Shown here: one piece after another, positions 12,101 through 37,436 of the stretch
How positions within the stretch are numbered: the first letter of the stretch is position 1
Layout of the letters: each line of letters opens with the position of its first letter
Source: Botryllus schlosseri
Lineage: Eukaryota
NCBI GenBank assembly: GCA_051294905.1
Contig: CM119385.1
Coordinates: forward strand, 8,990,001-9,054,000
DNA: 64,000 nt
Reading direction: 5' to 3'
The notes under the pieces: generated by a model
What the model was told of the DNA's origin: nothing
The model's input: the letters and a program-made list of their open reading frames with translations, nothing else
The model's database searches: none
Translations under genes and position numbers: made by a program

Positions 12101-15100
12101 ATGTTTCTTCAGCTCGGCGAGCTTGACTTCATGCGATTCGGAGGGATCGCGAACCACGACGATTTCTATCAAATGGACGGCAACAAAATCGGCGAATCCG
12201 GCGATGCGGGAACGCAAATTACAGCTTCGAGCGGATCTGGTATATCGGTGCCGCATGTTCAGGTGATTCCGGGTTATTAGTATATCATCAGATTATGCCA
12301 GTAATCGAGTTGAACGACTAGAAAATTTTCGCTATGATACTGAAACTGCCCAAATACAACTCTCTCTCTCTCTCTCTCTTTTTTGCATGATTCCCTTGCC
12401 ACCTTTAGAAGTGTTTGATTTGTGACATTCGTGTGCAGGATCAACGGGGCCTCTTTGTTATGTACGACCTTGCTGTGAAAGACTTTGAAGAAATCGAAAA
12501 GCAACTGTTACTCGTTGCGTCACATTTCATCAGTAAGCCGAAAAGTAGGTGGCGCTTTAACTTCTGAAAATGTTTTTCGTCACAGGAAAAATGGCAAGTA
12601 ATTGGTTTGACCTGTCGGTAATAGTTTGATCAATTGCCTTGTCTGTTGTTATTTTCTAGGGTTGGAGTTTTGGGTAATTTTGCAGAAACAAGGGCTGGGC
12701 AGTCAAAGTCCGATTCAGGACATTTTTCGCTACTCAAATCTTGCTGTCTGTGTCATGAATTTCAATTTTATCGAGATTGTAGCCGAATAAGGGACAGAGT
12801 CTTGATTTTGAGCGGATTCGCATCGAAATATGAGCGAATACTCAGCGCTGCTGGAAAGACAACTGATATATTATCATATTACCACAAGTCGGGACATTTA
12901 TTTGTCAATACGCATTCTTACAATAGGTCATTTATATAATTGATGTCTTGTTTTCATGCATAGGTATATTTACAAGTCAATGGAATTATGACATGAAAAT
13001 ACGGATTACTTCCAAGATTTTCTGTTCAATTCGAGCAAATTTGAATAATGTGGGATGATATATGATAGAGAAAGTAGGTGTGTTATACCGAGATCTCGTT
13101 AACGACAATTGCTTGTTTGAAGACCAAAAGAAAACTTCGGCTCAAAGTAACTCCAGTCGATCCACGTTTGATATCCTACATTATGCGAATCATCGCGTGG
13201 ATAGGTTTGCGGTTTTGCTGGACGCCTGGACTTGCCATGTGAATTTTCTTCACAGCAAAAGAGAGGTTAGTTTGCACTTGTTGACACGCTGAAGTTACTG
13301 TATGTCAAATATATTTGCTCAGGCGTCAACTAATTGAATCCTGACATTTTTCAAATAGGATTATGTTGAATACCGGTTATTATTAATAAACCACTTGCAA
13401 TGTTTACAGCAAATTCAATCCTTGTTTTTCAGTTGCTAGATTGTTATCTGGAGGCTTACGGAAACATTTTCGATCCCAAAGACAAACGTGCCATATCCCA
13501 AGTTGGTACCAATGCAGTATACCAACCTTTACGAATATATAAAAGAAGTTTTGTTTTTAGGTGATCACGGATGTTATCCACAAACAGCCACTATTCGACT
13601 TTACTCAAGATTACTTCATTGAGTCGTACAAATTGGAGTGCTCATGCCTTCAATTGAAAACGACGCTTACCAAGAGGGTATGTAAAAATGTTTGCTGAGA
13701 TGTTATGTTTCGGTAGCATTCGCAGCACCTCTGTGATTAATTTATGACAACGGAAAAGATAGAAAAATGTGGAAATAATGACTAAATAAATATATATAGA
13801 ACTACTAGGCGAAGACTCTGTTGAAATCGGTTAGGTGTCCTGTTGTATGTAACTTGGAAATTTCTGCAGGTGTTGAATTCTCAAATTGAAGACACAAGAG
13901 CTTACACCGAGGCTGTTTTGAAGAGGGAACAGGCTTTTGGATTGCCCTATCCTATCGAAACAACCCAAATGATATCGCTCAACCTACCCTGGTGAGATAG
14001 ATTTTATTTTTACAACAAAGACAATCAGATTAACCTAGCAGTGCTAGCTTCTTAAAATGAGATGCGTCTTAATCATGCAAGTAGAAAATATCGAATATCT
14101 GAATTACATCTCTTCACCACAAACATTATTGTACATTTTTTGTGCTCAGATTTAGTTTGTATCTCAATTGTATACGAGCTTTAGTCAATAGATGTTTCAA
14201 GTTAATTTAAACACCATATTATTGATAGGCATTAGACTAGCCGCCGCCATCATTAATCACATTCCCACGGAGCCATGGCGCAGAGGTGGCTGGAATCGGA
14301 GAACATGGCGCTCGACAATGGAGACTGATCTTGCGCAACGCGGGCTTTCGCTTGAAGACGCCCACGACCGCCCACGTTGGAGACGCTTAACACGAGCCCA
14401 AAACTGATTATCTTATGTTCTTTTTGTCTCCTGTTTTCTTTTGCCCTTTTTTATTTTATCTAATTGAAAAGTCGATATATATATATATATTAGACTAAAT
14501 AGTTGTGTCATCCATTTTAAGCTCATCTCTGCTCAACATGGATCTTCTTGAATTCCATCCAACATTGGGATTGGCAGCCGTACATCTCTCGGAAGCATTG
14601 AAGGAGGTTTCGGATGAAGTTATTCAAGTGTGTTCTCCGACCTGCGCCATTTCAATCCTAAATATCTCATTCTAACGCGCCGTGAATTCACATTTCTCAG
14701 AGTCGAACTTCGGGAGACTTGACAGGATCGCTGCGAGTGGAGAAATCGTTTCTGGAGTTGGCGATTCACGAATGGGAGGAAATGACAGATGTTGGATCCA
14801 GCTATTCGAAAGTTGTACAAAAGCAGGTGACTTGATACTATTTTGACATTAATCAGTGCTATTTCCAACATAATTGTGAAATGTTTGCTCTCCATTGAAA
14901 AAAGTTTTCAATCAAAAACCAAGCGTGCTAGAACAGGTCAATTCAATTACTCAATTCTGCATTGTTTCAGATGCTATCTGGACATTATTGCGATTCCCCT
15001 ATCTTGCTTGAGGATGCGATAACGTCCGCCTTGAAAAACTCGGAGTTAGGCGATACAGAATCAAAGTCCGAGAAAGAGAGTCGCGCAAAAACTTCTTGGA

Positions 15101-18100
15101 CGAGTGTTTTAGAGGGAGTCGTGCTACAACAGCGTTTGCGTGACGCGGCCTGGGAAACTGAGATACTTGCAAGGTCCGTGAATGACTGTATGAATTCAGA
15201 CCGCTTTTGGGAGTATGTGAATCTTTCTTGGCTTGACTCACGGTTGCACAATGGTGACCTTCGGTAGACGTCTGATAAATTTCAACCACGGGCCATAGTT
15301 AAGCATACGAAGCAAGCAATGGTACATACTAGATTGCTTGTGGCATTAGGTCATTTGTGCACCGAAGATTCTCAGTAACTTGGACCATGAAACCCAACGT
15401 TACTTGGATACAAAGCAAATTAGAAACCTTGATCTAAATATTTTTTGATTTTGTGATACGACCAAATCAAGGTTTCAATGCTTCCAGGATGGGAAAAAGT
15501 AAATATAACTATCATTATTACTGGAAATGGGTAGTATAATTTCAGTGCTTGAAAGAAACGTCGCTAGAACTCGAATCATTACACCTAATTCATGATTCTG
15601 ATTCCAGTACTCTATAATTTTGGCCATACTAGCGATTACCCTACGCTTTTATTCTGCCAATTGATTTCGATCATGTTACACTCCAATGATGTATGCAGTC
15701 TAAAAATGTCTCAAAATTTAATCATATGTGCTGGCTTGATTGTTTCATTATTTCCGTAGCTTACTTGAGCTATGAGTTTTTCCTGTATTGGTACTAAATA
15801 TCAGTACCGCTGTTTATTGGGATCCTGTGGCTTTTGTTGTGAGCTTGTATCGCGTTGATTTCGAGTGACATGTTTGTGTGTGTCATTTTCAGACTGTACA
15901 CCAGAACGTGTAAAGCCTTAGACTTTCCTGAAGGTCACATGTATCTGAGAATAATCCAGATGGAGGATGCGAGTGCGAAATTGACGCCCGATCTGTCAAA
16001 AGTCGGGATGGCACTTCTTTCTCCCAATGACGCTAACGTAGATCGGTAAGGAGAATAATTTTCGTGATTAGTCATGTGTAGCTGGGATCGGCAACCTTTT
16101 TTGCTCTACGGACCGCTTTCAAAATGAAATATTTTCGCGGACAGATCTTTAGAAAGCACGAATGTTCAACGTTGAGAATTGATTGAACCCCATACGCTGT
16201 AAGACTAGCAAAGGCGGTAACACATACTGATGTTTCAATTAAAGACATTAACTTTCAATTATTTTGAGTGATCTGGACCACTATGCAAAATTAGGCCCTT
16301 ACGGACTTTTTGCGGACCAGGACTAAGGGTTGCTGACCATTGACGTTATTGTGTCATCAGGTGGTGGCGCAATTCACTTGGAATTTCGAAATTTTCGATT
16401 AACTTTTTAAATTTAAACCCTTGTTAGCATGTTTGTTTCAACTCCACCTGTGGATTATACTAATATGAGTTTCGAGTTCTACCTCAGGCTTGCATTCTTT
16501 CTTAGATACTCTCCCGATTTCCTACCGCTAGCAATTCACGAACTGGATACTTCTCATTTGTCAAAGTTTTCATTCCATGACAGAAATTCACTTTTGAAGG
16601 TAAGTCAGTATCAGTTTATTAATATTTTCATCACTTCCAAACACCACAAAACTGCGATACAATGAAAAGATAAGAAGGTGACGAAACGACTTGGAGTAGT
16701 CTTTGAAATCAGACACCCACCTGGGTCGAGGCGAAGTAGAGACATGCACGACGAGACAACACGCAAAGACATGCTTCCTGCACTTCAACAAAGTAATGTA
16801 GTGTACGAATATAGGTGCCACTGTGATTGTGGCTACGTGGGAAGAACGTCAAGACGTCTGCAGGATCGCATAAACCAATATGTCCCCAGATTTATCAGAA
16901 CACGCTCAGTGAAAAGCTCACCCTTAACTCATCCACTTAAGATTGATGCTGATCGATCAAAGGCCATTAATTCTGCCATCGGCAAACATCTGTTGGATAA
17001 TCCGATTTGTGCGAATAATTATCGAGACGACCGATTTCGAATCGTAGGGCGAGGTCGCTCACAATTCCATTTGTGTGCCTTGGAATCAACTTTTATCAAA
17101 ATACACCAACCAAAACTCTGTCAACAAAAGGAGTTCGTGTACCACCTAAAAATAGTACATTGAACGCTCTCTCTTTCATGCTGGTGACGTCATATTTTGT
17201 GATACGATTGTTGATATACAATGTTCTTTCCAATTCTCTACTAGTTGCTGACGATTACCCCTGACGAGTGTCAGCCGAAAATATTCGGGTTCATTTCAAT
17301 ATGAATATACTGTTTAATTGAATAAATTTCTTGTATTTCAACTTGATTGCGGACATGCCCGACGACTATCCGATAGCTGGCGAGATACTGTTCCACAATT
17401 GGGGTCCGGAATACTTGATAGAGCAATGAATTATCTTGTATTCCGGCCTGATCATATGATAGTTGTTCTTTGTTGACGCGCGTGTGCCATACTTGTTCGC
17501 TTTTGACTCTGAGGTGAAGTAGTCGTTGTAATTTGAGGAACTGTGACTGCAATGGAACTGATACGTAAACTTGGCAATTACTAGCTTCATTCACATCTTA
17601 CCTTTTTTGAACTAATGCTGACCAATAGGGGCCGTAAACCGTCAATGCAAAGCGGGTTGTAACAGCTCGCAAGGTTATCAGTCACAAGCCAATTCCTAAT
17701 TTGCTGATTTGGACTGGTGTAATATTTATTATATGGAAATTCCAGTGTCTCAAATACCAAGTCTACATTTCAGAAGTTTTTCCGATTTACCATAAACGTG
17801 GCGTTATTCAGAGCAGGGATTATTGAATTTTCGAGCCTGCAAAACCAGTTTTTATGTGACCACTAAATGTGTAATGTCTGATTGCCTTTGCAGATTATTA
17901 ACACACCGAATGCTCTCGATAAAATTCGCATCTCTCTCGCGTGTCAACTCGCGCATAGAAATTCATTGGCGGTTGCCGTGAACCTGGTCGACACCTGCAT
18001 GCTGTGGGATGTGGTACCACCGTCTTCGCCTGATGTAAGAATTTTCGTGCAAAGTATTCTTTGAAGTTGTTGTGAGGGCACTCGTTGCATTGATCTCATT

Positions 18101-24100: not shown

Positions 24101-27100
24101 ATTCATGAAGGGAACATTTCGCTAAACTACTTTACAAAATCCGCAGCACTACATGGTATATAGCATTGCCTAAAACTGATAGGAGTGGTACAAGCAGGCA
24201 AAGCGTTTGTTACAGACTATAATGCAGGGCGAATGTCTTTGTGATGTTATACCTGTGTAATCTGACTCCAAAAGGTTACGTGTACTATTCACTGTTTATA
24301 TCTCTCTTCTTTCGACGAACCGGCATCCAACGGCAGTGAACGCCTCATTTCTAACGTACCACAGAGTCTGTCTTGTACGCACGTATTTCAAGATCACCCG
24401 GTCCACTTTCTTTGTTTCTGTCTCCACAACTTGTAATTTTATTGGGCCAATCGTACCAACGATATATGAACCGTTTCCAAATGTAATGTTAAATTATATC
24501 CCCTATACATTGTATCACACACACACATAGATATAGCAGAAATACAAGGTCGTACACGATGTGTGTTACATGTTACATGTATTCCTTCCTATCGATGTTC
24601 CATACGACACACATAGTATATCACACCACATGTTCTATCATGTTTCACTTCCTGGATAACATTTCAAGAAATGGAATGTAATCCATGGTATGATTATAAT
24701 TACCAATTACCAAGATATTTTATTATACTGACCACATCTGCATTGATGCAATAAATCCATCGCAGAAAACACATCTCTATCAGATTCACATACAACTAAA
24801 TAGGACCGTGCCTGTTTGATTGCATGTCTCATTGACTACTCTATGCTGCCTAAATTGCAGGCATCGGGTCTCAACTGACGGAAATCCAGAAGCAGTTAAA
24901 CCATCTCAAAACGGGCTCGACCCCGTACACTCGCCACCCGGACGAAGTCGCCGAATTCCTCAAACTCAAACGGGACACCATGTTCCTCGAATTTGAGCAC
25001 GGAGTTCTCAGCTACATTCAAAAGTATGATATTTTAGATTATTTCATTTATTAATATAGCATTACGGAAGCTGTTATAAATCATCACTTTTCAGATTTCA
25101 CTCGCGTAACTTAAATCCTGCGACGGACCGTAAAAGCATTGCTGCAAACGCGCATTTCGCGTTACAAGCTTTGAGTAGCCACGCTCATCTCAGTCTCTAT
25201 CAAACATTCGTGCACGTACCGGAAGCGACCAAGCACGTAGCGGATATTTCGAGAAGATTGTACCCTTGGTTAAGGTTTGAATATGCACGTTTATTGCAAC
25301 GTTGCTACGAGAAAACTTACCTGAAACTTTTAACTTTGACGGAATTTTCTTTTTGACAATATTATCTTGAAAAGAAATTGAAACTGTAGATCAGATATTT
25401 CCAGAGGTAGTATTTTGCTTAGTCGCGAAGATGCACCTTGCAATTTGTAAAGTAGCCACATTGATTAACTGCTACATGAGCACGATACAATTTTATAAAC
25501 GTCAACATAATTTTTTTTTGCCTTTGGAGAGACAGATATTAGGTTTAGATGTGGATTAAGGTCAAAGTTGGGGTTGAAGTATCCCAAGATTAGGGTTGGG
25601 GGTATTAGGGTTGGATGTGGGTTAGAGTTAAGGTTAGCGACAAAGTTGAGATTAGGGTCTCCCAGGATTAGGGTTGGGTAAGGGGGATATTAGGGGTGGG
25701 GGATGGGGTATTAGAGTTGGATGTAGGTTAGGGTTAGGGTCAAAGTTGAGGTTAGGGTTTCCCAATATTACGGTTGGGGGAGGGGGATATTAGGTTTAGG
25801 GGAGAGGGGGATATTAGGGTTGGGGAGGGAGGATATTAGGGTTGGGGATGGGGGTATTGGGGTTGGATGTGGGTTAGGGTCAAAGTTGCGGTTGGGGTAT
25901 CTCAAGATTAGGGATGGGGGATATTATGGTCGGGAGAGGGTGGGATATTAGGGTTAGATATTGTGTCCCTCACCCTAAACCTAATCTTGGGATACTCCAA
26001 CTCCAACTTTGACCCTAACCCACATCCAACCCTAATATCCCCCCTCCCCAACCTTAATCTTGGGATCCCCTAACCCCAACCCACATCCAACCCTAATATC
26101 CCTCCTTCCTCTTCCCTAATACCCCCCTCCCCCAACCGTAATCTAGGGATACCCTAACCCCAAATTTGACCATAACCCACATCCAACGCTAATATCTCCA
26201 TTCCCCCAACCCTAATATCTGTCTATTCAAATGCAAATAAAAAATATTTTGACGTTCACAAAATTATATCGTGTCCATGGGGAAACATTTACAGGTGTCA
26301 TGGGGAACACTGTTTCGATCTCGGGCGTATATCGAAGAAGTGCCTAATTTTCATACCTTAAATTTCTGCTCCCACTTAAAGTAGTATATATATGCCTTTG
26401 AAATTCTCCTACTTCTACTTGGGTACCAACGCTGACTACTCTGACTAGGTCAAGGTAGCCATATTGCAAATCTTATAGATTCGACTACAATAGAAACTTG
26501 AAGCATACGTGCATCAAAAGAATTAAGTACACTTTCGTTAACTCATGATCATCAGCATCGTGGCTCACGCCGCCCAATTTCTCTCCACTGCAGTTTTCAA
26601 GATACACACGACCGGTTTCCCTTGAAATATCGGCCTCACTGGAACAATGTCGAAGACTGCATGCATCTTTGCCTCGCGGCTTTGGAAGAAAACGATCGGC
26701 AGAGAATGAACGGAGAGCTTGTAGGCGCCGCCATGATCTATCAGGATGTTCTCAACGGAGGAACTAAGCAACTCGATTCAATTCACGGTATATATTCTAC
26801 TATTGGATTGATAATGCTGTAAATTAGTGTAAGGGTATTCATCGTTTCACATCATAAGTGAGATCTTATGATGGCGCATATGAGTATTTCATTGAAAAGT
26901 TACAGACAAGTGTACCTGTGTGATCAGCCTAGTTGACCTTTAAGGTCATATCGATCATTCCTATCTGATACCGAATGCTGTGCATGCATATTAACTGAGC
27001 CACCATTATTGCTGTCTGCTTGTTATGCATATCGAAGAATAAAGACTCTCTCTTTCTCTCTCTCGTATTGCAGCCTTTAATTTAATTGTAATTTTTTCGA

Positions 27101-33100: not shown

Positions 33101-36100
33101 ATCTGGAGAGCACCGAGCTCACTTCCATGCAAGACAGGACTATTTTAGAGGAGCAATTGCAATGCGCTCGGAAAGCTGTTGAAAAGGCGAGTCTCGACCT
33201 GCACCAAGCATACAATCAACTCGAGCGCGAGCGAGAAGAACAAAAGGAGAGACTTTATCGAGAAGCGAAGCAGGAACAGAAAAGGTAAAAGCTTGTGTGT
33301 TGGGAATGGTACCATCTCGTCCCCGATGGACTGTTAATTCCTAATGATGCTTCCAATTTTGTGTTCAGTGCATGAAAACTTTTCTATCATTTTTTTTCTA
33401 TATATTTTCTACAAGGATTTTCACTGAAGATGAAGGAATTTTTTTCAGTTTCTACTTGGAATGAATACATCAACTTTAATGTTTTGTCATCACCGTTTAT
33501 CGTCATTATCATTGTCTTTTAGAAAACATTTGTCGGAGGTGCAGAAGAAGAACTTGCAGCGACTTGGTACTGAACTTGTAGAAAAAGACAAAAGGTTAAC
33601 CACCTTTTTGGCTGAAAAGGAGAAGATGGAAGTTGCAAGTGATGCGTGGCAATCAAAAACCCGCAGGTATGCTGGATACAAATTGCACTGTGACCGAGTG
33701 CTCCAAGTACGCTTAGCTAATATTATTAGAACTTGATATATGGAGTTTTCAGGTACTGATAGAGAGAGCACAATGAGCTCCTTATCACATACGATCACAC
33801 CAATGTAACATATTGTGTGGAATAATTACATGAGTCGCAGGAAAAGTGCTACTTGTAGTAGAATGTAAGGTGGAAATTTCGAAATCTAGCTGCAACAAAC
33901 AAGTGATTTCAACTAGCTGAACATTCAAATCTGTCTTTAGTTTGTTCTCGTGGACTGCCGAACAAAAACCATTGATTAGCAGAGGTGAATAGTTAAATAG
34001 GTGGATTTTGGGTTACAATAACTTTCGATTTTATAAATTCCATGTAAAAATTTCAAATTTGAGTTTGCTTCTCACCATACTAGAAAAATGTAATTAAAGA
34101 TCTTGTTTCGGAATCCTGCGCCAAAATCTGCTACTCACGACCACTCTAAATACAATATCCAAATCCACGTACAGACTTGCTCATGATATTGGGTTGTTTC
34201 ATGCCAAATGAAATAAGTTGAAGCGAGCCCTAATCTCCGCTTTGTGCATTACTCAACATGCCTGATATCACACAGAGAAAAACTAAATGTGATATCCTTG
34301 TTCTTCTGTATATTTTTTCCTTCTAAAGAATTTAATAGTTAATAATGTGTGCGGCATGTCAAAAAACAATGCAGATACTTCATCAAAGCACCTTGACGGT
34401 GTTGATGAAAGTAATCTTTCGTCCTTCCTTACTTACTGTCTAATTGATCGTAATTTCTTGCTACAGAGATGTGCAAAAATACCAGCAACAATTGATGGTC
34501 GATAGATCCTTGAAGCTTGAAGCATTTAACCGAATTGACGATCTGCAAGCTCATATTTGGGACTTTGAGCATGTGAATGCAACGCCACAAACCCCAGGTC
34601 GAATCGCAAGCTCGGGAATAGGTGAGTTGTCCCACACCAAATCTACCAATGGATATAGGCTACTACTTTCTGTGTGATTATCTCTTACTACTATCTCTCT
34701 CTCTAGTAGTTTCCCTAAACGCATGAGCGATCTCGTCTTCTTGTTGTTGTGATTGTGCGACGTGCGTGTATGTATGTATTGGCACCCACGTCTTGTGAGT
34801 TGTTGGAGCAATAGGGATTAGGCTAGTCGATACAACTGTTCTTTTGTATTTCTGTTTAAACATTTATTACGGTATTTAACCTATGAATAAATGCAAAGTT
34901 GCACATGATCAAACTTAATACAACAGTATCGTGGCTTCTCATGAGGACACCAATCTGATTGAAATCAGCATCGTGGCCGCCTCCCGAGCATCATTGAATG
35001 CCATTGAAGTTGTCTCCTGGGACGATGTAAAGCGCAGTACGGCATACGATCCTGTTCTCAGTGAGTTAAAAAATCACATCATATCAGGATTCCCAGACAA
35101 ATCGGACAAACTGCCTTTTCAACTACAATCATATTGGCGGTACCGCGACGACCTTTCGATCGTAGACGATGTTGTCATGTATAATGACCGGATTGTCGTT
35201 CCCCCGCCGCTGCGAGGGGTTATCTGTGAAATCTTACACTCGGCACACCAAGGGACTGCTGCCATGTCACAGAGGGCGCAGGCCACAGTATTTTGGCCTG
35301 GGATGACTGAGTGTATAGCACGTACACGAGCACGTTGTGACAACTGCAGTAAAATGGCACCGAGTCAAGCATACATGCCTCCGGCCGAGCCATTCATACC
35401 GACCTACCCTTTCCAAGCTGTTGCCGCTGATTATTGCACCGCTGCAGGCCACCACTATTTAGTCGTTGTTGACCGCTTCAGCAACTGGCCAGAGATATTC
35501 CATGTGAAGCACGGTGGGCAAACGTCTGGAGCCCTCGGACTCCAAGATGCATTACGAAGTTACTTCGGCACGTTTGGTGTGGCCGAAGAACTTAGCAGTG
35601 ACGGGGGACCCGAGTTTGCTGCCCACAGCACTCGGGAATTTTTTCGAAAATGGGGGGTGCGCCACAGGCTGTCGTCAGCCTACCACTCCAGGTCAAATGG
35701 CCGCGCGGAGGCTGCGGTGAAATCGATGAAACGACTCCTTCTCGGCAACATTTCGCAGGATGGCAGCATCCGGACCGATGCAATTACTCGGGCATTGCTA
35801 CAGTTTCGCAATTGCCCCGACCCTGCGAATGGACTCTCCCCTGTAGAAATAGTATTTGGCAGGACTTTGAAAGATGCGTTGCCGATCAAAGCATGGGTTC
35901 CAGTTTTCACACAGCGCAACATCAGGCCATTATGGAGGAATCTCTGGCAGAGGCGCGAGCAAACGTTACGTACCAGATTTGCGAAGCAGCTGGAATCTCT
36001 GTCGTTGAACACTAAGCCATTATCACCACTTCTTGAAGGTGATGTCTGTCGCATTCAAAACCAAAACGGTCGTTATCCCCTTCGCTGGGACAGAACCGGC

Positions 36101-37436
36101 ACTGTGGTTCAGTGCCGAGACCATGACCAGTACCTCGTGAAAGTGGACGGTTCCGGCAGATTGACGCTACGTAACAGGAAATTTCTACGCAAGATTGAGC
36201 CGTACTTCCTGAACCAAAAGCACACATATTTTCAGCCAACGGTGTCGTCTCCCGGCACAGCTACGTCACCTCAAGTCGTTTCGCCACCCGCTCTAAGTGG
36301 ACAGTCGAATGAGGTAGACCCTGGCTTGCTGAGATCCACCGAATCGAGTGCAGAAGATCATCTACCAGCTGAAGTACCGATCGACGACACTAGTGTACCC
36401 GCACCGTCTAACAATAGACGCCAGCGCTCAGGCAGAAATGTTACCCCGCCAGTATGGCACAAGGACTACGTTATTGGGGCACAAATTTTATGTTGATTCC
36501 CGCTTCAATCGCCATTAGAGTATTTGGTTGGACGTTCTCTACTCGCTGTATTTTGAACTCCTCACTCAATGCTCGTTGATTTCGTTAGGAGTTGGGGGGG
36601 ATGTGTGATTATCTCTTACTACTATCTCTCTCTCTAGTAGTTTCCCTAAACGCATGAGCGATCTCGTCTTCTTGTTGTTGTGATTGTGCAACGTGCGTGC
36701 ATGTATGTGTTAGCACCCACGTCTTGTGAGTTGGTGGAGCAATAGGGATTAGGCTAGTCGATGCAACTGTTCTTTTGTATTTCAGTTTGATCATTTATTA
36801 CGGTATTTAACCTATGAATAAATGCAAAGTTGCACACTTTCCAAAGATATAATCGACTGTAGCTTATAAAGATGTTTGTTTTGATGATTTATTTCTAGAT
36901 ATTTACTTTACATCATTTAAGTCATTAAAATGAATTGACTTTAAGAACTGGAGATAGGTGGTAAATTGATTTATCACTAACAATAATGACTTATTTATAT
37001 GATTTAATTACTTAAATCGTAAGCACAAAGTATTTATTAACCTAAAGGTCACAGCCTAAGCTGACCAGAATGACCACCAAATCATTTTTTCAAAGTTGAA
37101 TCATATATGACTTGGTCATAGTTTAAATCAAAATGATCCTTCATTCATGATTATATTTGCTATCCAGGATCTGTCAGTGGTTATGAGAGCTTTGCCGTTA
37201 GCCGAGCGATGAGACCTTCCAGCTGTTTTCCATCATACAAACGAAACGGCATTGATGAACCTAAGGGCCTGTTGACTAAAAGACCAAGCACTGTGAGTAT
37301 AGGTGTATCTGTATAGTTTTTTGTATGAAGGTTGCTTGCTATTCATCCTGGTTTATAACAGTCGTCAGCAAGATTTCGCACTAGGAGTTCCAGAAGGAAT
37401 GTTCATGGATTGTCGGAGGATGGCAAGTCGGTTTAG
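3185..37436 (+). CDS. CCDC162: CCDC162 / DUF4549-family large coiled-coil protein, multi-exon
   Basis: Phase-consistent exons, e.g. 3185-3318 (MKRHKVSNTKKLVNLENKIQSELVDLKTEIEE), 3376-3559 (SVMLPKDINYFKEERG...LPLILH), 4102-4325 (LLRWRRFCQHTAVIE), 4724-4868 (EDIAIYLRWLV), about 10455-10610 (GAYLSFLHLR...NYFRSVERT), about 23570-23716 (ISADWGGTEG), coiled-coil exons at 31-34.6 kb and a putative last exon 37362-37436. Family recognised from recalled motifs, not a database search; not every exon was traced. Confidence 0.8.
3760..4024 (+). mobile_element. Degenerate Penelope-like 3' end / terminal repeat with decayed hammerhead
   Basis: Aligns by eye to 17115-17310; core reads TTGACAA instead of CTGACGA, followed by GTGTCAGCCGAAAATATTC. 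Confidence 0.75.
5230..5390 (-). pseudogene. hAT transposase C-terminal dimerisation-domain relic with two frameshifts
   Basis: Minus-strand frames join to FPTLATLAKDYMGLTAQP / SERIFSIAGNFYTARRNLLGPETF / ALMFIKCN, fitting the hATC pattern yP.La.lA..yl...atS..sER.FS.ag......R..L......Lmf...N. Confidence 0.75.
5612..5757. mobile_element. MITE end with AATTAC/GTAATT subterminal repeats
   Basis: Ends GATCCAACTCTG (reverse complement CAGAGTTGGATC) with repeated CAATTACA motifs. Confidence 0.45.
5757..5975 (-). mobile_element. tRNA-headed SINE, copy 1
   Basis: Reverse complement aligns along its length to 11800-12018, including A/B-box-like head and GCTCAGCAT core. Confidence 0.8.
7089..7702. mobile_element. 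hAT-type foldback element with long modular imperfect TIRs
   Basis: Termini TAGGGCTGATCAAAAA...TTTTGAACAGTCCTA; perfect 8-bp TSD ATGTCCAC (7081-7088, 7703-7710); GGCTCAATTCCAAC twice per arm at about 145-bp spacing. Confidence 0.9.
7745..7990 (+). mobile_element. Retroposon 3' end (L2/CR1-like or SINE tail)
   Basis: Shares CAATACTAGTC...CCACGACCTGACATATCGATCTCGCCTTCC with 28786-29075; ends AATAAACTGAACTGAGCTGAACTG (polyA signal plus microsatellite tail). Confidence 0.6.
9296..10005 (+). mobile_element. 5'-truncated Penelope-like element with inverted 5' terminal repeat
   Basis: 9296-9460 is the reverse complement of the 3' terminal repeat (including hammerhead); then GIY-YIG C-terminus (9464-9848) and a direct terminal repeat to about 10005. 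Confidence 0.9.
9471..9848 (+). pseudogene. GIY-YIG endonuclease C-terminal fragment of a Penelope-like element
   Basis: VYQYKCLCDCGYVGRTSKRLQERINQHVP...SAIGKHLLDNPIC...LESTFIKIHQPKLC; no RT upstream. Confidence 0.9.
11095..11620. mobile_element. AGTAGAAGT-family non-autonomous DNA element
   Basis: GTAGAAGT, AAAAGTACTCAAGTAG and AGTAGGCAAAACCTAC motifs shared with 30555-30780 and 540-660. Confidence 0.55.
11800..12018 (+). mobile_element. tRNA-headed SINE, copy 2
   Basis: A-box-like GCGTAATGGTAG, B-box-like GGTTCAAGCCC, then GGTCAGACC and core TTCCCTGCTTGGTGCTCAGCATTA; second copy at 5757-5975. Confidence 0.8.
14260..14410 (+). mobile_element. RTE-type LINE 3' coding remnant
   Basis: Translates RRGGWNRRTWRSTMETDLAQRGLSLEDAHDRPRWRRL, resembling the RGRP..TW...dl...gl...dA.DR..Wr C-terminus of RTE-clade RTs. 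Confidence 0.65.
16080..16345. mobile_element. Degenerate hAT/Charlie-like MITE
   Basis: GGGATCGGCAACCTTTT...GGGTTGCTGACC ends with internal CGGACC motifs; TSD not resolved. Confidence 0.5.
16763..17310 (+). mobile_element. 5'-truncated Penelope-like element (GIY-YIG C-terminus plus terminal repeat)
   Basis: KDMLPALQQSNVVYEYRCHCDCGYVGRTSRRLQDRINQY...LKIVH-stop at 17163, then a 3' repeat nearly identical to 9849-10005. Confidence 0.9.
17257..17290 (+). ncRNA. Minimal type I hammerhead ribozyme, intact core
   Basis: Stem I ACCC/GGGU, core CUGACGA (17261-17267), G-C stem II, GAA-A, palindromic stem-loop III A-AUAU-U, cleavage site C17286. Same layout as minimal hammerheads known from Penelope-like elements. 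Confidence 0.8.
17310..17595 (-). mobile_element. L2/CR1-type LINE 3' coding remnant
   Basis: Minus-strand YFTSESKANKYGTRAST...CSIKYSGPQLWNSI matches the yF....h.y.TR....si.y.Gp.lWN.l RT C-terminus of CR1/L2-group LINEs. Confidence 0.75.
18482..18778. mobile_element. hAT/Charlie-like MITE
   Basis: TIRs CAGTGGTTCCCAA...TTGGGAACCACTG; internal ATCGCCCCC repeats; TSD degenerate (5/8). Confidence 0.8.
18890..19694. mobile_element. Tc1/mariner (pogo/Tc2-like) non-autonomous element
   Basis: TA-flanked termini CCGTAATTT...AAATTACGG; subterminal GGGTGCGTA(T/C)TAT repeats. Confidence 0.8.
20715..21941. mobile_element. hAT MITE with GGAGCC repeats (host of a nested insertion)
   Basis: TIRs CAGGGCTTTGGAGC...GCTCCAAAGCCCTG; perfect 8-bp TSD GTAATGGG (20707-20714, 21942-21949). 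Confidence 0.92.
21125..21800. mobile_element. hAT/Charlie-like MITE nested in 20715-21941
   Basis: TIRs CAGGAAGGGCCAACC...GGTTGGCCACCCCTG; perfect 8-bp TSD ATATAGAC (21117-21124, 21801-21808). Confidence 0.92.
23925..24110. mobile_element. AGTAGAAGT-family fragment
   Basis: GGAAGTAGAAAATTACAGGTCGAAAAAGTACT motif block as at 11200. Confidence 0.45.
25475..26280. repeat. Foldback element with TTAGGG-rich modular arms
   Basis: Outer arms CATG..CACGATAYAATTTT..AACGTCAA..AGACAGATATTAGG are inverted copies; inside, G-rich modules (GGTCAAAGTTG..TTAGGG..GGATATTAGGGTTGG) on the left mirror C-rich modules on the right; centre about 25960-25975. Confidence 0.85.
27426..27656. mobile_element. Small MITE with about 50-bp near-perfect TIRs
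   Basis: CAATAGGGTCCATCAAAC(C)ACTAGGTGTCGCCAGACTTTGGG and its reverse complement at 27606-27656; superfamily unresolved. Confidence 0.85.
28590..29290. mobile_element. Inverted pair of Penelope-like termini interrupted by another retroposon end
   Basis: 28590-28780 is a minus copy (hammerhead to GIY-YIG stop region); 29120-29290 a plus copy with the hammerhead core deleted; 28786-29075 matches 7745-7990. Confidence 0.75.
30195..30490. mobile_element. Single arm of the 7089-7702 foldback family
   Basis: Two TTTGGCTCAATTCCAACC..TAGAAGCA modules about 145 bp apart. Confidence 0.7.
30555..30780. mobile_element. AGTAGAAGT-family element end
   Basis: CAGAGGGGGTCAAGTAGTC start and CTCAAGTAGAAGTAG repeats. 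Confidence 0.6.
31050..31470. mobile_element. GACTCGAGTC-repeat non-autonomous element, partial
   Basis: TCAATCTCA..TTTTGACTCGAGTCAAGTCGAGTCATTTTCAATT shared with 51060-51120. Confidence 0.7.
34671..34905 (+). repeat. 5' LTR
   Basis: Direct repeat of 36602-36836; AATAAA at 34886-34891. Confidence 0.95.
34906..34926 (+). promoter_or_regulatory. Non-tRNA primer-binding site (putative self-priming)
   Basis: TGATCAAACT directly abuts the LTR, lacks the TGG expected for tRNA CCA pairing, and is the exact reverse complement of AGTTTGATCA in the 3' LTR (36784-36793). Confidence 0.7.
34931..36496 (+). CDS. Ty3/gypsy pol C-terminal fragment: tether plus complete integrase (521 codons, no ATG at the start)
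   Basis: HHCC (LHSAHQG...CDNC), DDE (AADYC, SDGGPEF, RAEAAVKSMK), GPY/F-like block (GRYPLRW..G.V...YLVK) and RSGR...P.W.KDYV tail; no chromodomain. Confidence 0.9.
   Translation: MASHEDTNLIEISIVAASRASLNAIEVVSWDDVKRSTAYDPVLSELKNHIISGFPDKSDKLPFQLQSYWRYRDDLSIVDDVVMYNDRIVVPPPLRGVICEILHSAHQGTAAMSQRAQATVFWPGMTECIARTRARCDNCSKMAPSQAYMPPAEPFIPTYPFQAVAADYCTAAGHHYLVVVDRFSNWPEIFHVKHGGQTSGALGLQDALRSYFGTFGVAEELSSDGGPEFAAHSTREFFRKWGVRHRLSSAYHSRSNGRAEAAVKSMKRLLLGNISQDGSIRTDAITRALLQFRNCPDPANGLSPVEIVFGRTLKDALPIKAWVPVFTQRNIRPLWRNLWQRREQTLRTRFAKQLESLSLNTKPLSPLLEGDVCRIQNQNGRYPLRWDRTGTVVQCRDHDQYLVKVDGSGRLTLRNRKFLRKIEPYFLNQKHTYFQPTVSSPGTATSPQVVSPPALSGQSNEVDPGLLRSTESSAEDHLPAEVPIDDTSVPAPSNNRRQRSGRNVTPPVWHKDYVIGAQILC
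36602..36836 (+). repeat. 3' LTR
   Basis: Follows the PPT; ends TGCACA then TSD CTTTC; contains Inr-like TCAGTT at 36782-36787. Confidence 0.95.

Follow-up and report, generated by a model that had tools for sequence, protein, structure and literature searches.

The question raised by this locus is how reverse transcription would be primed in a long terminal repeat (LTR) retrotransposon in which the bases following the 5' LTR begin with TGA, not TGG, and match a stretch of the element's own LTR. The element, 2166 bp in length and on the + strand, occupies positions 34671-36836 of a stretch of 64,000 nucleotides (nt) from Botryllus schlosseri (assembly GCA_051294905.1, contig CM119385.1, positions 8,990,001 to 9,054,000 of the forward strand); this whole stretch is referred to below as the window. 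It is a defective copy of a Ty3/gypsy (Metaviridae) LTR retrotransposon, a classification that follows from its LTRs and target-site duplication, from the polypurine tract preceding the 3' LTR and from an integrase in which both an HHCC zinc domain and a DDE core are present. The comparative data described here suggest that the lineage to which it belongs, an animal gypsy lineage without a chromodomain, probably primes its minus-strand DNA with the 5' end of its own RNA, in the manner of Tf1. The mechanism is a known one, and what would be new is its occurrence in a lineage not known for it.

The primer-binding site (PBS) predicted for the window copy, TGATCAAACT (34906-34915, + strand), starts with the base that follows the 5' LTR and, read as its reverse complement, is identical to AGTTTGATCA in the 3' LTR (36784-36793, + strand). 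The latter, the predicted self-primer site, covers LTR positions 183-192, lies 43 nt before the LTR end and forms 10 of 10 pairs with the PBS; when the last LTR base and the T following the site are also counted, the window duplex is 11 bp long. An initiator-like TCAGTT is found at 36782-36787 (+ strand), its third base, the A at 36784, being the first paired base, and it is on this motif that the predicted start of transcription is placed. Both the exact ten-base complementarity at a site not starting with TGG and the coincidence of its A with the A of the initiator-like motif had been claimed in the first-pass annotation of the window, and both were confirmed by direct reading. As a control, the same anchored reverse-complement test was applied at 1597 other internal positions against either LTR; none of these reached a 10-base match and the longest match was of 9 bases. 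The PBS 10-mer occurs three times in the window against 0.31 occurrences expected, and the third of these, at 12623, is unrelated.

Further pairing between TTGTATT (36775-36781) and AATACAA (34917-34923) had been proposed in the same annotation. Both stretches are present, and to that extent the proposal held; it did not hold beyond chance, the pairing energy falling at the 7% tail of mismatched LTR/leader pairs (30 families), and no pairing extension of this kind beyond the main duplex was found in the relatives. The additional 7 bp were accordingly rejected as a conserved feature.

The comparison was made on related families and not on the window's own family. Eighty loci, denoted here by L numbers, were collected from metagenome contigs by integrase alignment with 14 matches; they are 37-53% identical to the window integrase, for which the closest protein matches show 58-61% identity. 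Hosts named in the wider group are Hydra vulgaris, Mytilus (M. edulis and M. galloprovincialis), Diadema antillarum and Actinostola. LTR ends could be fixed by a second LTR copy, using self-comparison and inspection of repeat ends, in 13 elements belonging to seven families; L014, L024 and L032 were left out of this set, their repeats touching contig ends or not being LTR boundaries. In six of the seven families the LTR is followed immediately by 10-14 bases that pair with a segment within the LTR of that same family, and in six of the seven no TGG-type PBS follows the LTR. A 10-base match beginning at the first base after the LTR was found in the window family (controls as good, 0/1597), in L007 (3/4759) and in L028 (0/5047), and one of 10 bases in L047/L048 (0/4801), in which the LTR end was set where the two copies stop being alike. 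The L031 group of six loci has a match of 14 bases (13/14 in L050), which none of 4834 controls equalled. The match in L013 is of 8 contiguous bases, or 10 with one G.U pair, and 50 of 4673 controls were as good; L075 gave no match, and controls are not applicable to it.

All 80 loci, 487 kb in total, were also scanned for perfect inverted repeats with a stem of at least 10 and a loop of 25-110. This yielded 115 hairpins, 41 of which (in 36 loci) have CAT/ATG as their inner triplet, against a trinucleotide background of 2%. Thirty-seven of the 41, distributed over 35 of the 80 loci, fall in the interval that separates the end of pol from the ATG of gag. Where the contig has an upstream pol frame the hairpin follows it by 86-646 nt. 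In those loci in which a long downstream frame was found, the distance to its next ATG is 11-177 nt, except in L040 (1465) and L057 (710). The other four CAT/ATG hairpins are located inside the integrase gene (L006), at the end of pol (L016), outside the element (L045) and in a partial second copy (L032). The 35 loci with a junction hairpin carry 29 different primer/PBS sequences and have loops of 27-71 nt, and the primer/PBS duplex in the relatives is 10-16 bp long. A relaxed scan, which is noisier (101 matches vs 19 in shuffles), adds L013, L022, L026, L038, L050 and L052. By eye, junction stems of 9 bp and 8 bp can be recognized in L029 and L059 respectively, while the junction of L004 is cut by the start of the contig. 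In five loci (L010, L019, L027, L065 and L070) the same hairpin is present at the expected place relative to the integrase, with a PBS starting TA or TC.

In many loci of 5.0-5.5 kb (for example L003, L023, L038, L041, L058 and L064) the two ends of the contig are exact repeats of one another for 61-212 nt, with the LTR in mid-contig. Such contigs are circularly permuted assemblies of multi-copy elements and not transcripts, and in none of the end-repeating 5.0-5.5 kb loci does the start coincide with the first base predicted for the RNA.

The first-pass annotation had proposed that PBS and LTR be compared for complementarity and covariation among family members. Carried out on the related families, this comparison gave at least 29 mutually matching sequences, together with compensatory changes within families. 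The L031 family contains two variants that differ at one PBS base, and the matching change is present in both LTRs. An alignment was constructed from contiguous natural stretches of the six loci that have a loop of 47 nt; all 66 cells of its 11-pair helix are paired, and at 6 of the 11 pairs both sides have changed. Slid registers of the same alignment pair at 24-53%, and the covariation score was reached by none of 500 shuffles.

The outer limit of the duplex is also well defined. In 15 of 30 families pairing of the LTR begins at the A of a pyrimidine-A-G, as compared with a background of 3% (binomial P ~1e-15), and in several further families the A is one base before the duplex start. Pairing does not continue upstream of the duplex, where the mean energy of a family's own LTR and leader is -2.45 kcal/mol as compared with -2.0 for mismatched pairs. 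A sharp duplex boundary at an initiator-like motif is what would be expected if the site were the very 5' end of the RNA. RNAs that begin with the first base of the site and end 15 nt beyond the PBS were folded for eight relatives; in all eight the minimum-energy fold pairs the 5' end with the PBS, and the z-scores of five of the eight lie between -2.1 and -4.1.

The complementarity, its anchoring at the LTR end, its conservation, the compensatory changes and the sharp boundary are direct observations. They appear to suggest the following course of events, in which the start of transcription, the cut and the priming step are inferred. Transcription would start within the LTR, at the A of the pyrimidine-A-G initiator-like motif. 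The RNA's first 10-16 nt would loop back across the 27-71 nt of LTR that remain and form pairs with the bases immediately following the LTR. A cut after this 5' stretch, which in Tf1 is made by RNase H, would leave a 3' end flush with the LTR boundary, and reverse transcriptase would extend the flush end into a short strong-stop DNA that copies the 27-71 nt loop. Since no TGG follows the LTR and the PBS sequences are many and different, they cannot all match host transfer RNAs (tRNAs). The comparative evidence supports the suggestion that a chromodomain-less gypsy element carries a self-complementary primer site independent of tRNA, and self-priming of the Tf1 type is considered probable for this lineage.

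To our knowledge, self-priming has been proven experimentally for Tf1 only. In Tf1 the first 11 nt pair with the PBS and RNase H cuts between nt 11 and 12 (PMC7175516, PMC4600332). In the reports cited here the mechanism has been assigned to the Tf1/sushi chromoviruses, which range from fungi to vertebrates, and to the related Tcn1 clade (PMC6317226, PMC4600332, PMC7175516, PMC6934838), and it has been predicted for the plant TAR lineage of Ty1/copia (PMC6317226); hairpin priming is described for some chromoviruses (PMC3601003). The junction studied here resembles that of Tf1, Tf2, Tj1 and other Tf1/sushi elements in that the bases after the 5' LTR are complementary to an LTR stretch thought to be the 5' end of the messenger RNA. 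It further resembles Tf1 in its length, the Tf1 duplex being of ~11 bp and those here of 10 or 11 bp in the window and 10-16 bp in the relatives, in the lack of a TGG-type PBS and in a geometry that would give a 3' end flush with the LTR boundary. Unlike the Tf1/sushi chromoviruses, the window lineage is without a chromodomain, and its named hosts are animals, in contrast to the fission yeasts that harbour Tf1, Tf2 and Tj1; in the window lineage, cleavage and transcription start are putative. The predictions for plant Tcn1 and TAR elements used the same criterion, namely at least 10 bp beginning 0-5 bp after the 5' LTR, with complementarity to the 5' LTR (PMC6317226); the Tcn1 clade (chromoviruses) and TAR (Ty1/copia) are, however, other clades or superfamilies with plant hosts. 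A PBS that does not start with TGG is shared with the Ty1/copia elements primed by half-tRNAs, but in those elements the PBS is conserved and matches one tRNA (PMC6317226), whereas in the window lineage it differs from family to family and matches the family's own LTR. In a literature search that included PMC5006619 and PMC2864245, subscription papers and supplements not being covered, self-priming was found described neither for Mag nor for any other animal gypsy element lacking a chromodomain.

Other functions for the junction must be weighed against self-priming. The stem could be an RNA structure specific to the 5' end, serving to mask the poly(A) signal in the 5' LTR or acting in packaging, dimerisation or translation control, with priming performed by something else. 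Such a stem can form solely at the 5' end of the RNA, its 3' arm being outside the LTR; AATAAA or ATTAAA is present inside the loop in the window and in 12 of the 41 hairpins, and priming is deduced from sequence, all of which would agree with a structural role. For a role of this kind, however, it would not matter whether the 3' arm started precisely at the LTR boundary, as it does in every matching family with independently fixed LTR ends, nor does the LTR-defined set offer an alternative TGG-type site after the stem from which priming might occur. The stem moreover sits exactly where every LTR element has its PBS. Masking of the poly(A) signal as the main role was judged less likely, 29 of the 41 loops being without such a signal, and a structural role in place of priming is on the whole regarded as unlikely.

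Considerably less probable again is that the PBS binds a host tRNA fragment or other small host RNA and that the match to the LTR is secondary, for which half-tRNA priming in Ty1/copia lineages provides a precedent (PMC6317226). The PBS sequences, of which at least 29 are different, match in each case the LTR of the same element, and when the PBS changes within a family the LTR changes so as to compensate; no host RNA could follow every family in this way. The sites start with TGA, TGT or TGC and not with TGG, and Rfam returned no family at the window PBS, its one sub-threshold match, resembling a small nucleolar RNA, being at 37179-37228. ARAGORN detected no tRNA genes within the 64-kb window and just two doubtful ones in 15 loci, which did not amount to a usable tRNA set. 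That the match arose by chance, or as a side effect of the rearrangement by which this copy lost its interior, can be given almost no credence. The deletion does lie close behind the site and only the 3' LTR gives the perfect match, but none of the 1597 control positions was as good, and the presence of the same feature at the same place in undeleted, intact relatives already contradicts this explanation. Self-priming remains the preferred interpretation of the junction.

Several observations nevertheless weigh against it. In the window itself, the primer/PBS pairing is not formed when the 5' leader is folded (z = -0.45), and the self-primer site of the copy's own 5' LTR (34853-34862, + strand) is degenerate, just 7 of its 10 bases being complementary to the PBS, as the first reading of the window had cautioned. 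In the relatives, the overall fold energy was unexceptional in three of the eight RNAs folded (L007, L047 and L028; z -0.65 to -1.09), in which the specific pairing alone stands out. The six loci of the covariation alignment were picked for perfect hairpins, and their 100% pairing is for this reason partly circular, although the double changes are not. AATAAA or ATTAAA is in the loop of just 12 of the 41 hairpins, which bears on the extent of the R region. The junction is held by L075, the most distant family (38% identity), and by L006, and in neither is there a match; in approximately 24 of the 80 loci it is absent from the contig or not recognisable. Finally, TGG-type sites are found in L055 and L056, and the integrase tree described below carries no support values.

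The TGG-starting sites of L055 (~70-90) and L056 (~90-125) are located directly before gag, and that of L056 continues into a short stem-loop. On their TGG start and on the usual form of tRNA 3' ends, we take these sites to be putative PBSs of the tRNA type; Rfam, which does not confirm this, gave no tRNA-like match at either of them. If so, they would mark the ancestral state beside the self-priming group.

The placement of the lineage was assessed from the domains of its proteins and from an integrase tree. The first-pass annotation had described the integrase as being without a chromodomain, and this was borne out: Pfam detected none in the window open reading frame (ORF) at E up to 1, none in four of four full-length relatives at E up to 0.01, and none is present in the precomputed Pfam matches of any of the 240 relatives listed. 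A neighbour-joining tree was constructed from the integrase tblastn segment of each locus (62 loci and the window, 394 columns) and was midpoint-rooted. All loci with the self-complementary junction fall into one large group, which includes the window element as sister to L001-L003, while L055, L056 and the most distant loci lie outside it. Among solved structures, the window integrase matched foamy-virus integrase and Ty3 Gag-Pol best and equally, at 46.9 bits each, and thus gave no sign of special closeness to the Ty3 branch. A position outside the Tf1/sushi chromoviruses is suggested by the absence of the chromodomain, not by a reference tree. The sole informative source name among the relatives is 'K02A2.6-like [Hydra vulgaris]'.

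The Mag lineage (Mag, SURL and Steamer) shares with the elements described here animal hosts that include marine invertebrates, a length of ~5 kb, short LTRs, a single gag-pol ORF, a 5-bp target duplication, the lack of a chromodomain and a high similarity across phyla. The label 'Mag-like' cannot be assumed, since many unnamed gypsy clades are reported in a mollusc survey (PMC6238403). Steamer and its relatives (the Mag C-clade) differ in having a 12-bp tRNA-Leu PBS that starts with TGG immediately behind the LTR and LTRs that start TGTAACA (PMC8905726), and MchSLE1 differs in the tRNA-Asn PBS reported for it (PMC11046912). The Steamer PBS motif, as given in PMC8905726, was found at no LTR/leader junction in the 80 loci, and the window site starts with TGA.

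One group of relatives is of interest for its apparent activity. L031, L035, L040, L043, L045 and L050 (WLWD01 contigs), together with L034, constitute a single family of ~5.3 kb with LTRs of 175 bp whose ends are TA..TA and not TG..CA. L031 has an intact ORF of 1589 aa, identity within the family's LTR pairs is 97-100%, and the 5-bp target duplications differ among several of the copies; the family gives the impression of recent activity. From reverse transcriptase to integrase it is 65-70% identical to mussel, sea anemone and sea urchin proteins (P0173, P0212, P0213 and others), which is unusually high across phyla. This likeness recalls the horizontal transfer that has reportedly occurred in Steamer-like elements.

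The window copy itself was characterized in terms of its structure and state. Its LTRs, each of 235 bp with TG..CA ends, are located at 34671-34905 (5') and 36602-36836 (3') on the + strand, and the same 5-mer, CTTTC, is found on either side of the element (34666-34670 and 36837-36841), confirming the 5-bp target-site duplication noted in the first-pass annotation. Each LTR has an AATAAA on the + strand, at 34886-34891 in the 5' LTR, where it separates the primer site from the LTR end, and at 36817-36822 in the 3' LTR. A polypurine tract (36587-36601, + strand), a purine run ending G7A, adjoins the 3' LTR, and a G-run before the 3' LTR is present also in relatives of the element. The space of 1696 bp between the LTRs contains a single ORF of 521 codons (34931-36496, + strand), a pol remnant without stops or frameshifts that covers the linker between RNase H and integrase and the whole integrase, with the zinc-binding domain at ~35198-35362 and the catalytic core at ~35453-35689; Integrase_H2C2 and rve are the only Pfam matches in its 521 aa. 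Gag, protease, reverse transcriptase and RNase H are missing through one internal deletion, while full-length relatives have ORFs of 1589-1652 aa with the order reverse transcriptase, RNase H, integrase in four of four. No second copy of the LTR or of the element is present elsewhere in the 64-kb window.

The LTRs when aligned are the same at 226 of 235 positions, and the nine differences amount to a divergence of 3.8%. Three of the nine are located in the 5' LTR within the primer site of 10 nt (binomial P = 0.005), where they make the site a perfect 10-nt palindrome; a conversion patch from a variant family and quasi-palindrome-driven mutation are both possibilities. The copy is old and non-autonomous, and it cannot work as it stands, because the 5' LTR site has lost 3 of its 10 pairs and most of gag-pol is gone. 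Its worth is as a pointer to the lineage and not as a functioning example.

Upstream of the element, an open stretch of 60 codons (34444-34623) is followed by GTGAGT, and the element begins ~45 nt later in the same orientation. The region 34444-34670 looks like the end of an exon and an intron of a host gene, although the stretch 34444-34623 has no Pfam match; the AATAAA of the element LTRs is in the orientation of this putative gene. Elsewhere in the window, a 161-codon ORF at 16678-17163 (+ strand) has cysteine- and histidine-rich stretches and no Pfam match; it may resemble the endonuclease end of a Penelope-like element. The remaining window ORFs also gave no Pfam match. The stretch 25627-25866 is a G-rich tandem array in which periods of 22, 46 and 100 bp are nested.

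A wider proposal is offered tentatively, and we hold it at slightly less than even confidence: a large gypsy clade without chromodomains, distributed across animal phyla, may have dropped tRNA priming for self-priming independently of the Tf1/sushi elements, with the primer set by the pyrimidine-A-G start and with a TGG-type PBS in the nearest assessable outgroup, L055/L056. The named hosts of this putative self-priming clade are cnidarians, bivalves and sea urchins. If the proposal is correct, self-priming would be a repeatedly evolved solution and not the peculiarity of one lineage, and a second self-priming lineage would make the mechanism older or more easily evolved than has been thought. 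Approximately 30 natural primer/PBS pairs would then be available as a comparative data set, and their covariation would give the rules of the duplex, namely how long it is, its fixed ...CA end and the boundary that it has at the start site. Pipelines that annotate by seeking a tRNA-type PBS alone would be shown to mis-score such elements, and the match between PBS and LTR would provide, for each family, a prediction of the transcription start from sequence only.

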